Of a stretch of DNA of 64,000 nt, positions 46,962 through 62,244 are shown one piece after another. The notes beneath the pieces are model-generated. The model was not told where the DNA came from and did no database searches. It saw nothing but the letters and a program-made list of their open reading frames with translations. Location of the stretch: the NCBI GenBank assembly GCA_051294905.1, contig CM119376.1, forward strand, positions 27,342,001-27,406,000, written 5' to 3'. Made by a program: the position numbers and the translations under genes. The first letter of the stretch is position 1. Each line of letters starts with the position of its first letter. Origin of the DNA: Botryllus schlosseri (lineage: Eukaryota).

Positions 46962-48108
46962 CAGTGATTCCCAACCTGTGGTACGCGTACCACTAGTGGT
47001 ACGCGAAGGTCCTTCAGGTGGTACGCGAGTAGATTCCGTATTTTTTTCGACCGAAGGGAGTTATCAGTTCACGTGGGGTTGATTTTGAGTTTTTTTTGAA
47101 GCCGTCGTCGTCCTGGTAAGGTGCGTCCGTGGTAAGGAAGCCTACGTCAAAGAAACGAAACCGACTTGTTGCGCCCCTGCATGACTTTCGATGCGGTGTG
47201 AGCAAACGTATGCCACCATAGTGTCCTATATGGTGTGGACACAAGCAAATCTCACGGCTCAGTATAATTGGTCTACGTCACACTTTCCACTTAGTCAAAG
47301 GCAACTTTACGGCCCTTTTACACCGGCTTGCCGAGCGCTAAATTCGATAAAACGGGTATCAATGGAAAGCTGCTACTGTACTGATTCCGAAATTCTAAAT
47401 TTTATTTTGCTCATGGTCCTCGAACCTCCCAAAATCTGCTTCGAATTTTGGATTGTGATCGAGTTTTAAAATTGTGACGCAACAATTCTGTCTGGCAAAC
47501 CGAGAGTGTAGCTAACAGAGTTGTTGTGTCACAATTCAAAACTCTATCACAATGCAAAATTCGAGGCTGGTTTAGGGGGGTTCTAGGACCATGAGCAGAA
47601 TAGAATTTATATTTTTGTAGTCAGTACAGCAGCAGCTTTCCATTGATACCCTTTTTCCGCATTTAGCGCTCGGCAAGCCGGTCAAAAATGGTCTTAAAAT
47701 TGCCTTTGACCAAATGGAAAGTGTGACGTAGATCAATTTCACTGAGCGGTGACATTTGCTCGTGTCCACTGTCCACATCCACACCATATAGGACGCTATG
47801 ATGCCACGCATCGACCGGCTAGTGCAAAATAAGCAATACAGCCATCGCATTTAATAAATATACTTTTGTTGTTTATTGTTATTTCAATATGTTGTTCTTC
47901 TTGTGACTGGCGGTGAAAAAACAATTCCATGCATCCCATCAAGGCATCAACCCTGACTGGTGATGCCTAGTTTAATAGAACTTGTTAACACACCTAGCTC
48001 ATGTCAAATACCTGATTATGACGTCATAAATGGTGGATGTAGGTGGTACGCGAGCACTGCATAAAACTTCAAAATGGTACGTGGGCGGAAAAAGGTTGGG
48101 AACCACTG
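46962..48108. mobile_element. Charlie-like hAT MITE carrying a nested foldback element
   Basis: TIRs cagtgattcccaacc / ggttgggaaccactg; perfect 8-bp TSD CCATAGGC (46954-46961, 48109-48116); ggtacgcg subterminal repeats. Confidence 0.92.
47217..47800. mobile_element. Foldback element (Galileo/P-like), short copy, nested in the hAT MITE
   Basis: Ends catagtgtcctatatggtg / caccatataggacgctatg; about 270-nt inverted arms nearly abutting; 7-bp TSD ATGCCAC (47210-47216, 47801-47807). Confidence 0.9.
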
Positions 48109-56312: not shown

Positions 56313-56799
56313 TTTACAGTGCACTGTGCAGTGCACTGCTGTATACGTTAAGTTTTAAGGCAAAAATTATGCTATGAGGTTGACGGATATGATATTACAT
56401 TCACATGGTACACTGCTGATTGTTACATCAATTTCGAAGTCAAGGCTTATGCTATGGGTCTGGCTGATATGGTACTACATTTACAAGGTGCGACAAATTA
56501 CCGCTGGTATATCTCACTAATGATATCAAGTGTTTGCTATAGTTGCCATTGCGTATAAAGTTTAGTAGACGCATCCCCGAATGCTATTAACGCATGTTGT
56601 GTTGGTTTTCCAATAACATTAGGCTCACCTATCAGCCCAAATCGCTATTGCGAGATTTTGTTGGAAAGCCGTAGTAGTATCGGTCTTTGTTGTTTGTTGT
56701 CAACAGGGTTCGTTAAAGAGGTCATACAATTCGTATTACCGCTTTATACAGACTTACAATATATCTTTGTTGGATGCGTGTATACAACAACGATCGTAT

Positions 56800-58905
56800 C
56801 ATAGTGTCCTATATGGTGTCGACACAAGCAAATCGCACGGTTCAATGAAATTGTATCACGTCACAGTTTCCATTTGGCTACAGGCAATTTGACGGTGATT
56901 TTTGACTGGCTTGCCGGGCATTAAATTTGATGAATCGGGTATCAATCGAAAGCTGACTCTGCACTGATTACGAAAATATAAATTTTATTCCGCTCGGGGC
57001 CCTGGAACCCCCACAATCAGCCCCCAATTATTCATTGTCGAGTAGATTGGCAGTGTGACGCAACAATGATGTCTGGCGAAACGAGAGACACGCTCAAGAG
57101 CAAGGATGCGGCCGAGCGGCGAGAGTGGGATCAGCTGACGTCGCGGCAATAGCGATGTGCAAACGCGCGACAGAGAAACGCTGCGCTGTTGATACTTTTT
57201 CTATGCGTTTCGGTACAAGCGAGCACACACCAGCCTTTCCTTGACTTGTAAGGGTAGAACTGGGTCCACAGAATGTATTAGGGCCCTACCAATTTTCGCG
57301 CAATATCCTTCAGCTGATAAAGATATGTAGGCTACGTCTAAGTAGTCTACATTGGATATGTCAGATTATTATGATATCGATTGCCTTAGCCCGCTTGTTG
57401 CGTAGGGCTCCAGAGACACGTCGCGCTGTTGATGGCGGGTGTCGATACTTTCTATAGTCGCTTTTATGGTCAAGTGTGAGCAGGGAGCATTGAGCATGAG
57501 CATACATTACAAGCTTTTATTTGATCCGTATGGGTAGGACTTGGTCCGCGAATGCAGCAGGTAAAATGTTGATTGTTGAATAAAGTTTAACAGCAGGAGT
57601 GTCGAATTAGACTGGTATCGCTGTCCGGATTCAATCCGTTACTAGAAAGCTTGCGGGCCATACCTGCCAAATGGTTCCAAAATGTTACCACCAAATTCAT
57701 ACCTTTGTTTTTCACTGGAACATATCTGATATCACTATAAACGTTGACGTTGGAAGTTGGTTTAGCATTTTTCAATCACCAAATAGTTTTTTTGAATGCC
57801 GGGGACCTTTTGCGTCAAAAGTAATACAGTGGTATCACAGATCGAATTATATTCATTATGTAGCCTGTATGTATATTCCTAATGTAACTTACGTAATACG
57901 GATTTGCAGTATTTTTTTCGCATCTGTGAATAACTGAATGTCCATTGTCCATTCGGCCCAACAGAGTTTGCACTTTTTGCCTTCTCGGAATTTGGCAAGG
58001 TCACCGACGTGGTGCTTATGGGGACTAGAGTGAAAACTCAACACTGTAGTTGTATTACTACAATATGATATCTTTACATTATCTAAATTTGCTGTCTTGA
58101 GTGAATCTTATTACTTGAAAGTATATTTTTCTTACTAGAAATATCTCTAACAGCTGAAGGATTGCGCGAAAATTGGTAGGGACCAAATACATTCTGTGGA
58201 CCCAGTTCTACCATTACAAGTCAAGGAAAGGCTGGTGTGTGCTCGCTTTTAGCGAAGCGCATAGAAAAAGTATCAACAGCGCCACGCATCTCTGGAGCCC
58301 TACGCAACAAGCGGGCTAAGGCAATCGATATCATAATAATCTGACATATCCAATGTAGACTACTTAGACGTAGCCTACATATCTCTATCAGCTGAAGGAT
58401 ATTGCGCGAAAATTGGTAGGGCCCTAATACATTCCGTGGACCCAGTTCTACCCTTACAAGTCAAGGAAAGGCTGGTGTGTGCTCGCTTGTACCGAAACGC
58501 ATAGAAAAAGTATCAACAGCGCAGCGTTTCTCTGTGGCGCGTTTGCACATCGCTATTGCCGCGACGTCAGCTGATCCCACTCTCGCCGCTCGGCGGCATC
58601 CTTGCTCTTGAGCGAGTCTCTCGTTTCTCCAGACATCATTGTTGCGTCACACTGCCAATCTACTCGACAATGAATAATTGGGTGCTGATTGTGGGGGTCC
58701 CAGGGCCGCGAGCGGAATAAAATTTATATTTTCGTAATCAGTGCAGAGTCAGCTTTCGATTGATACCCGATTCATCAAATTTAATGCTCGGCAAGCCGGT
58801 CAAAAATCACCGTCAAATTGCCTGTAGCCAAATGGAAACTGTGACGTGATACAATTTCATTGAACCGTGCGATTTGCTTGTGTCGACACCATATAGGACA
58901 CTATG
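56800..58905. mobile_element. 2.1-kb foldback element with ~634-bp TIRs and 7-bp TSD (Galileo/P-superfamily-like, non-autonomous)
   Basis: Arms 56800-57433 and 58272-58905 are near-perfect reverse complements starting CATAGTGTCC; extra 240-nt-period tandem copy at 58141-58282; TSD ATCGTAT (56793-56799, 58906-58912); no transposase ORF. Confidence 0.92.
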
Positions 58906-59075
58906 ATCGTATCATGTTACGTTCACGTGTTGGGCTTATGGATTTCCAGGATGTAGTAAATTAGTGAGTGCTGTGTTTTGTTTCGCTTGAGTGCCTCCGG
59001 TGATCGCAATTTCTAGACGATTATGTCCTATTCGAAGCGACACCGTTAGCGCACACGGGCTATTTCGGTTATAAC

Positions 59076-59591
59076 TAGGGCTGGGCAAAATGATTCGAGT
59101 ACTCGAATCTGAATCGAGTATTAATTTTAATGATTCGAGTCGAGTAGTAAAATACGATTTTTTCGAGTACTGAAATTATACGCTCCTCGCCACTGAAAGT
59201 TAATTTATCAACGAGAATTATAGTTTCAATACTCATTTTCACAGTTGAAGCCTTGAAACCTTGATTGGCGGTATCGTAGCATACGAAACATATAGTACAA
59301 AGCTACGAAAGTTACTGGACGTAGCACATTTCCAAAATCATGATTATGCCACAGAATTTTCACCAAGTGGAATGAGATCGGATGGACAAAATAATACCAA
59401 AGTATCATTTATGAGATGTATAATAGGCATTATATTCTTTATGGTGGCATAAACGGTACATATTTGAACTTTGACTTATTTTATTCAGTTATGACGTCAT
59501 AATGAGTGATACTCGATTACTCGACTCGACTCGAAGCATATTACGTGATTCAGAATCGAATCACTCAGCTACTCGATTTTGCCCAGCCCTA
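59076..59591. mobile_element. hAT-type MITE (tagggctgggca family), copy 2
   Basis: 16-nt TIR tagggctgggcaaaat / attttgcccagcccta (last base matched); perfect 8-bp TSD GTTATAAC. Confidence 0.92.
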
Positions 59592-62244
59592 GTTATAACT
59601 TGCGTATATTATTACTGCAGGCATTGCTACATGCGTTAGGATGGGGTAGGTGAACTTCAAATTACGTGGCGTAATCGTCGTATTAACACCGTGTTTTTCC
59701 GAGGATTTGCCAATGTCCAGCTCCCGTCAATGTTCTCTGCTTTTGAAAGTAAATATGTTTTGGACGTGCTTCAAAATCTATTGCGAAGTCGGCGTGAATT
59801 ATAATCCCAAACAGTGCCTTGGGTATGTCTCTCATACGTGAATCGCCATTTCATTGAGATAACTAGATGTTCTACTTTCGCTAGCTGCAAAACTCAACCA
59901 AATACCATCTCAATCACCAAATTCATGCTTTACACAACACATATTCAATATGAAATCTTGGTACTCACTACCAAACAGAAGGTGTTTACTGTAAACATAT
60001 TAATACCACTAGTGTCGTGTCTTATGCAGTGTAAAACGCCTATAAATTTCGCAGGACTTTTTACAGTGCTACACTTCTACATACATCGACATTGCCATGG
60101 TCTCCTGGTGTTATTGAAAGGTCACAATGCGTCATTTGCATGAACATAATAATCGAATGGGCGTATTGAGGGGCTGTCGAGGTGTTCAATGAATTGGTTG
60201 CTATTTGTCTTGAATACAGTCATTAGTAATGTGTCTGATGACCAATATTATCTTCCAACTTGTTGCAAGACTCACCTCTTTGTGTATGTATAGATTATAT
60301 AACGTGTTTATTAAGCTTTAACCCATTTACTATCACATCAGCCTGCGGACACAACCAGATTTACTACGAGACAAAGCATTGCGCAACTTTTAGAAATATA
60401 CGCGATCGAACACGCCCAAACATGTTGGCACAGAACAAAGCCATTGGCTGCCAGCTGCCTACTCCAACCAAAATATTAGCGGTGCCGACTGCCGAGCACC
60501 ACTAACTTCGCCTGTCATTGAATCAATAAACTCTGTTACAATTCAACATGAAGATTTACAGATTGCGTGAAACAGAGTTAATGAAAAAGATGTTGTTTTG
60601 AGTAGCAGTAGAAATGAAGAATCACCGTAAAGTCGCTGTGTTCTACTGTTGATGCAGTGCTAGAAAGTATATTCTCGCGATGCTGGTCACAGCCACTCGA
60701 CATCAATAATTTCATTTTTGCTCAACGATTACATATTACCAAGCTCTATATGTTTCCTAGCCCTAGAGTAGAGACCGTGCAAACCTGCCTGTCGAGTAAC
60801 GATGAGCTTGAGCATTGGTGAATTGAATACAATATGGTTGACGCTGTCGGAATGGTTCCCCCGAACTGATTCCGTACACTCTTGTGTGAAGTTTGTATTA
60901 GCCGCTTTCCCACAATGAACACCACTATTCATAAATGACCACTCGCGAATAAAATGATATTACAGTATGCAATGCTACTAACGTAATTAGCTATACCATG
61001 AGAAACGTTTGTTGTCATAATTTTGAATGACGAAACGTAAGCTACTGCTATGCAAAGAGGCAATCATCTACTAATGTTAGGAAGTTATTTTACAATTTAT
61101 CGTCTTGGCCGTTAGGTGGCGGAAAAGACAGAGCTTATATTATAGGTCAACTGCGACACTGGCGGATGACCAGCTGTCTCATCGTTGTCGTTTGTTAGAA
61201 ACTTCTACGACTCTTTACATACAGCAGTCCTAGATTTACAGTGGTGAAAGTATTTCTGCGACCCACAGTTGCGAAGCTTCTACTCCGAGACCAACTGCGC
61301 TCATAACATTAAGTGCTTGTTGATATGATGTGATTTACTTCCTGCGAACGTAGTTGGTGACGCACTCCGAATGCAAAAGCACTCCTGCGTGCGTTTTTGG
61401 ATGCGTATTGACATAAACAATTGTACTGGCAACGTGGGCTAGGTAGAACACACCATAGTTTAATATTATTTTGCAGTATCGCAGCGTCATGTTTCAAATC
61501 ACTAGTATCACGTGAGATCACACCGCAAACACTTTTCCTGTAGGAAGCAATCCCACGATTATTCTACAGATCAATATCAAATACCCACTATTGCCCAATC
61601 CGGATTATTCTCGGCAAATGGTATGTTTCTTGATAGCAAATGTCATCTGCGAAGTCACTACAGTGGCGGGCATGATCACGTATATAAATAGATGATGTTC
61701 TTAAATCGAGGTTGGGCGTGTTTTCATAAGGTTGTAACGCCGCGAGAACCAGACAATCAAAAGAATTTCACAGGTATTTTGGTCCCTATGTGGCCGACAT
61801 GGTGTTGCCGATACGTTTTCTAGAATTCTCCCAACATATTCACAGATCACTATGTGTGTCACCAATGTCCACGCCTTTTCACTGCCCTATAGTCGCGTGG
61901 GATCCACTTCTAACATGCATATTACATAACCCTAGTGGTTATATAACCAACGGAAATTAAACCAATGAACTCATGCATCCGGTATGAGCTATCGAAGCAT
62001 GGAACGCCCGCGTGGATACACTATGCGTAGTTTATTACTCTTCGAATTACCGCGGTAGTGTCATGCTATTTGTTTGTTATTACACCGTTACATGATATAT
62101 GACTTGCATCACATGTGTTTTGTCCGGATTATTCAACTGTATATTGAAAAGTCACAAATCACTCATTGAGGTCTGGCTGCAGCTGGCAGAGATCGAAAGT
62201 AACAAGCAAACTAATTTAGTAGCGCATGGCCTTTTAGTAGGCCA

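Follow-up and report, generated by a model that had tools for sequence, protein, structure and literature searches.

Among the superfamilies of eukaryotic cut-and-paste transposons, only the P-type elements, for example, 1360 and Galileo, typically create a 7-bp target-site duplication (PMC3698922). The length varies within that superfamily, being 7 bp for 1360 and Galileo and 8 bp for P (PMC3698922). Duplications of 8-9 bp occur in P-type families outside the Galileo/1360 type. The target consensus of Galileo is GTAGTAC, GTANTAC, or GTATTAC within a 15-bp palindrome, and the targets of P and 1360 contain the halves ANAGT and ACTNT (PMC4168063). The P transposase makes a staggered cut, which lies at the tip of the element on the 3' strand and 17 bp inward on the other, an arrangement that a review of the enzyme calls unusual and characteristic (PMC7776569), and an old site can therefore keep up to 17 nt of each element end. 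Gene-less derivatives are represented by BuT5 of the Drosophila repleta group, a P-element MITE that has been implicated in inversions (PMC3698922). The Galileo literature consulted counts only three members from Drosophila in the P superfamily (P, 1360, and Galileo) and mentions P-like genes in Ciona without foldback derivatives there. P-type transposons or THAP9 homologues in Ciona are attributed to Kimbacher et al. (2009) in the passages of PMC3698922 and PMC7776569 that cite this work.

Here, we describe an element from the sea squirt Botryllus schlosseri, found in a stretch of 64,000 nucleotides that is referred to below as the window. The element spans positions 56800-58905 (2,106 bp), begins with CATAG, ends with CTATG, and is flanked on both sides by ATCGTAT. 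Its 634-bp inverted arms are 98% complementary and enclose 838 nt. We consider it very probably a non-autonomous, foldback-like DNA transposon of the P superfamily, with a layout closest to that of Drosophila Galileo and belonging to a young family of about 1,700 copies, which we call the CATAG family. The parts of the element, its relatives in the window, and the neighboring MITE are as follows.

56793-56799, no strand: left 7-bp target-site duplication ATCGTAT, from reading of the flank
56800-57433, plus strand: left inverted arm, 634 bp, with the CATAG start, from inverted-repeat pairing and the family consensus
57434-58271, no strand: non-coding interior, 838 bp, with no Pfam match in its open frames and no tblastn match to P-type proteins
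about 58141-58294: extra partial copy of the 243-bp arm unit on the right side, within the interior/right-arm region
58272-58905, minus strand: right inverted arm, 634 bp, with the CTATG end, from inverted-repeat pairing
58906-58912, no strand: right 7-bp target-site duplication ATCGTAT, from reading of the flank
1264-1327, no strand: old fragment of 65 bp related to arm positions 122-185 (78% identity), from sequence comparison
47210-47216, no strand: left 7-bp duplication ATGCCAC of a short relative
47217-47800, no strand: the short relative, 584 bp, of a sister subfamily, from arm comparison and folding
47801-47807, no strand: right 7-bp duplication ATGCCAC of the short relative
59076-59591 (59068-59599 with its duplications): hAT-type MITE, 516 bp, directly downstream of the element

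The 2,106-bp element is non-autonomous and codes for nothing, since Pfam, even at E = 1, gives zero matches in any of its open frames and tblastn with P-type transposase proteins of the same genome gives no match inside it. A segment of 134-156 nt recurs 240 bp apart, corresponding to about 1.5 copies of the repeat unit in the arm region, and Tandem Repeats Finder made no call for this partial unit. The preliminary description had credited the element with internally repetitive, unequal arms. The window copy bears this out only modestly, through the recurring segment and the extra partial unit on its right side. Across members, the 243-bp tandem unit is present in 1.5 to 2.8 copies, and the members with 2.6-2.8 copies make variable internal repeats a property of the family. 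The same description had recognized a second copy at 47217-47800 with a 7-bp duplication and termini of the CATAG...CTATG type, and this reading holds, with ATGCCAC on both flanks. The short relative consists of little more than two arms of ~290 bp, which are ~78% identical to the outer 290 bp of the arms of the 2.1-kb family. Folded as a single strand, it gives one long hairpin (z = -30.7 relative to shuffles).

The size of the family was estimated by counting the terminal 20-mer with at most one mismatch over the 495-Mb assembly (219 contigs), with the reversed pattern as the control. This genome-wide search with the terminal sequence, which had been recommended from the outset, yielded 1,717 forward and 1,745 reverse occurrences (3,462 in total, against 0 in the control), or roughly 1,700 elements genome-wide. 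Paired ends in the first ~18 Mb of contig 1 fall into two main size classes of ~2.1 and ~0.6 kb and minor classes of 1.4 and 2.3-2.9 kb. The closest copies are 96-99% identical to that in the window, and the arms diverge on average by 1.2-1.5% from their side-specific consensus. Near-identical arms had initially been ascribed to either youth or gene conversion. Four or five sites that distinguish the consensus of the left arm from that of the right are fixed family-wide, and the window copy adds private changes of ~1% (7 in one arm and 4 in the second, counted over 2 x 649 columns). The close match of its arms is therefore a sign of youth and does not require gene conversion.

Some further observations concern the family and its surroundings. 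At one locus, a repeat of ~430 bp (L032 8998-9427) is inserted into a family arm; its copies are 94-96% identical, and a first look gave more than 1,800 candidates genome-wide. The loci L017 and L018 (C10, at 3.273 and 3.285 Mb) lie 11.6 kb apart in opposite orientations and match at 100% identity for more than 3 kb, a stretch that takes in a family copy with its flank; this points either to an inverted duplication of very recent date or to a fold-back of the assembly. The depth of the family is very high in four independent sequencing runs. One of these runs is labelled as a different organism and contains a 657-bp contig of the interior with 10 differences. The sequences from the runs that cover the window locus are short unitigs, and among them no allele lacking the element was seen. 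Moreover, of the words sampled from the element, about half are also present in the runs X7, X15, and X14, which comprise two other labelled organisms and a seawater metagenome. These foreign matches could stem from close relatives, cryptic species, or environmental host DNA. The terminal 20-mer was not found in metagenome contigs or viral contigs of public collections.

The length of the duplication and the sequence of the target are well defined. All 11 complete copies have a direct repeat of exactly 7 bp, and two copies rebuilt from paired loci agree. The 7-bp duplication proposed in the preliminary description is thus established, and the 8- or 9-bp duplications that would have spoken against it occur in none of these 13 copies. 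Over 49 distinct ends, the seven bases beside the tip read R-T-R-n-Y-A-Y, with T at position 2 of the duplication in 46 of the ends (p = 9e-21) and A at position 6 in 44 (p = 8e-19). A further preference lies outside the duplication, where an A stands at a distance of three bases in 34 of the 49 (p = 6e-9). The target of the family is a palindrome, A-n-n-[RTRnYAY]-n-n-T, whose form agrees with that of the published motifs of Galileo, 1360, and P.

The duplications may themselves serve as targets. Family ends lie back to back at a distance of no more than 30 bp at five genomic sites (C6:12472034; C11:1143646, that is, L015 1692-1718; C12:5549929; C15:11967885; and C13:19018141). Four of these gaps measure exactly 7 bp and the fifth 2 bp, compared with ~0.006 pairs expected at any one exact spacing under random placement, and all four 7-bp gaps fit the target motif. 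This suggests that the duplication beside a resident copy has been re-used as a target. The tips would allow it: CAT... and ...ATG could supply the outer T and A of the motif, in which case a duplication adjoining a resident copy would stay a full target.

A second type of trace was sought in the form of vacated sites. The whole genome was searched for places where the 9 bases at the start of the element are followed, after 0-30 bases, by the 9 bases at its end, and a second version of the search used 12-base anchors. Mini-palindromes consisting of the two element tips alone were found at 18 sites, as compared to 0 in the control, and they look like excision scars. Most of them (14 of 18) are 24 bp long, and 10 of these are identical, being composed of the first 12 and last 12 bases joined across TATA. 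The others measure 25 bp, 33 bp (16 + 17), 34 bp with filler, and 42 bp (21 + 21), one of each. Expressed as bases kept per side, 16 putative scars (24-33 bp) retain 10-17 nt, one retains 9 nt around filler, and one retains 21 + 21. The only scar with readable flanks (L179) is bordered on both sides by GTCACAA, a 7-bp direct repeat that agrees with the target motif. The 42-bp mini-palindrome (C8:24417277-24417318) comprises the first and last 21 bases and is centered on a palindromic GTCGAC at positions 19-24; since 21 nt per side exceeds the 17-nt cut, it would need a second route, for example, interrupted gap repair.

The genome is rich in P-type transposases. The RNase H domain of P transposases (PF21787) has at least 150 scored matches genome-wide, many of them in open frames of 400-850 aa, and intact frames of 799, 813, and 792 aa contain HTH, RNase H N-terminal, GTP-binding-insertion, and RNase H C-terminal domains. 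For the 799-aa frame, comparison with the solved P transposase of Drosophila gives a match at E = 2e-15. Among the P-type families, P-A is the main one; it is ~7 kb long and includes this intact 799-aa frame (L073, C13:16230300-16238290). Its tips are unlike each other (CAAGCC... and CACTGAG..., with ends also read in L076-L079 and L161-L177), and a subterminal inverted repeat of at least 235 bp starts ~35 bp in; many copies are 97-99% identical. The P-A duplication is 8 bp, with the consensus GTnnnnAC (two complete copies, 20 flanks). A second family, P-C, is 3.5 kb long and comprises at least 30 copies that are 88-96% identical and carry a decayed gene (L032 3553-7092 and L140). Its terminal repeats begin CAATGATATATACAATG. 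The readable tips of both P-A and P-C are unrelated to those of the CATAG family.

A copy combining CATAG ends with a P-type transposase reading frame, which the preliminary description had proposed to look for, did not turn up in 18.4 Mb of listed paired ends, where no pair of CATAG ends encloses a P-type match, or around 17 P-type loci probed from outside. The sole 5.25-kb pair, on contig 1, consists of two elements nested in a 2.1-kb copy and lacks a long ORF. When three P-type proteins were compared by tblastn with the window and 42 family loci, only an unrelated neighbor was matched. Probes of 70 bp taken 0.7-2.9 kb upstream of the 17 further P-type loci gave no arm match except in L140, and no CATAG was seen at the ends of another P-type element, whose coordinates were deduced and are possibly inexact. 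Several candidate partners were considered and rejected. Six ends at which the likeness to the element soon breaks off belong to copies interrupted by nested insertions; a P-type fragment near a family end in L032 is part of the separate P-C family, which has its own ends; and the arm match in L140 comes from a piece of a family member that sits inside a P-C-type element and whose tip points toward the gene. Cross-mobilization of the CATAG family by P-A is likewise unsupported, as the two share no more arm 8-mers than shuffles do (p = 0.09).

The evidence has to be weighed against other classes of transposon. The CATAG family could in principle belong to another or an undescribed superfamily, whether Mutator-like, Dada-like, or new, that generates 7-bp duplications and cuts its ends in a staggered manner. 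Such a reading could draw on the facts that no transposase is tied to the family and that the P-type families examined do not have its ends. However, MULE duplications are usually 9-10 bp, as opposed to 7 bp throughout the CATAG family, and Dada elements target specific RNA genes. Nor are features of Transib or RAG-like elements present (a 5-bp duplication and a heptamer starting with CAC), the duplication being 7 bp and CATAGTG having T at position 3. Duplication length, target motif, and scar length together all match published P-type behavior, and we regard a different superfamily as improbable.

Less probable still, to the point of being very unlikely, is that the family is a non-autonomous member of the hAT superfamily whose transposase happens to give 7-bp rather than 8-bp duplications. 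It is true that hAT targets likewise have the form nT....An or GT....AC, that hAT-type MITEs are abundant in this genome, and that a hAT fossil lies within the window. The MITE directly downstream of the element illustrates what the class looks like here: it has TAGGG ends with TAGGGCTGGGCA tips and an 8-bp palindromic duplication, GTTATAAC, in keeping with the hAT pattern, and the genome contains 2,862 occurrences of its terminal 20-mer. (Its sequence, too, has very high depth in all four runs.) Against this adjoining family with its 8 bp, the duplication of the CATAG family is 7 bp in all copies, and the CATAG tip does not conform to the YARNG rule that hAT tips follow. Excision provides a further distinction. 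hAT elements leave via hairpins on the flanks and no element ends stay behind, whereas the CATAG family has scars; the similarly abundant hAT-type family of this MITE, taken as the control (its 2,862 ends were counted by the same method), shows no comparable mini-palindrome genome-wide. In this genome, inverted-repeat elements thus do not generally leave ends behind. None of the three hAT features, that is, the 8-bp duplication, YARNG tips, and excision without retained ends, is seen in the CATAG family.

Finally, a local inverted duplication or assembly artefact, for which one might cite that assembly errors can create long palindromes and that one locus pair elsewhere is a 100% identical inverted duplication, merits practically no credence and is already refuted by copy number and site-specific duplications, with thousands of ends at separate sites, each having its own 7-bp duplication, and high depth in four independent sequencing runs.

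Three independent lines of evidence, the 7-bp duplication, the palindromic target, and the scars that fit a ~17-nt cut, therefore indicate a P-superfamily enzyme, of the Galileo/1360 type with regard to these features. The architecture is Galileo-like in its long inverted arms, internal tandem repeats, and variable length (classes of 0.6-2.9 kb). The P/Galileo-like interpretation put forward in the preliminary description is thereby supported by duplication length, target motif, and scars. We infer that a P-type enzyme moves the CATAG family, and the choice of any particular one is equally presumptive. A model for the movement of this P-type family can be proposed as follows. The transposase, of P type and acting in trans, would bind the arms; its cut would fall at the tip of the element on the transferred strand and ~17 nt further in on the second strand. 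Insertion would occur at a staggered 7-bp cut in the palindromic target A-n-n-RTRnYAY-n-n-T, and repair would result in the 7-bp duplication. At the donor site, the two ~17-nt tails would be joined. In the commonest join, the self-complementary TATA at positions 11-14 would pair and the flaps would be trimmed, leaving a 24-bp mini-palindrome between the two copies of the duplication.

A bolder proposal, which we put forward tentatively and regard as rather doubtful, is that a Galileo-type branch of the P superfamily, with long repeat-bearing arms, 7-bp duplications, GTnnnAC targets, and 17-nt cuts, is active now in a chordate relative, driven either by a rare transposase gene or by the P-type enzyme of an element with unrelated ends. 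Were this so, thousands of long palindromes and back-to-back ends at 7-bp spacing would be an active cause of inversions and breaks in wild populations. The long palindromes and reversed end pairs are also plausible candidate breakpoints for rearrangements. The presence of the whole behavioral signature, namely the 7-bp duplication, palindromic target, scars that fit a ~17-nt staggered cut, and long repeat-bearing arms, at high copy number in a genome distant from Drosophila suggests that such traits are old features of the P superfamily. Tunicate P-type transposases could also be tested on the CATAG family as a natural substrate.

Compared with known systems, the CATAG family shares with Galileo the 7-bp duplication, a palindromic target of the GTnnnAC type with flanking A/T, and long arms that contain tandem repeats and vary in structure; in both, most copies consist of two arms and a short non-coding spacer (PMC4168063). 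It differs in its host, a sea squirt rather than a fly, in its arms (0.3-0.6 kb), which are shorter than the longest of Galileo, and in that no transposase-bearing CATAG copy was found in the search described above; the likeness described here is one of layout and behavior. With 1360 (Hoppel), the family has in common the 7-bp duplication and the A..GT and AC..T halves of the target, but 1360 has short terminal repeats without foldback-like arms. BuT5 is similar in being a gene-less, high-copy derivative dependent on a P-type enzyme in trans, as is presumably the CATAG family, but has 3-bp terminal repeats, duplications of 8-9 bp, and a link to its master through shared ends that is missing for the CATAG family. 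The Drosophila Foldback (FB) elements also have long arms made up partly of tandem repeats and the potential to fold into a hairpin over the whole element. However, their duplications are 9 bp, as opposed to 7 bp here, and the CATAG scars point to P-type cutting. With Ciona, lastly, the present genome shares the tunicate P-type transposase genes, of which it also has many, some of them intact.
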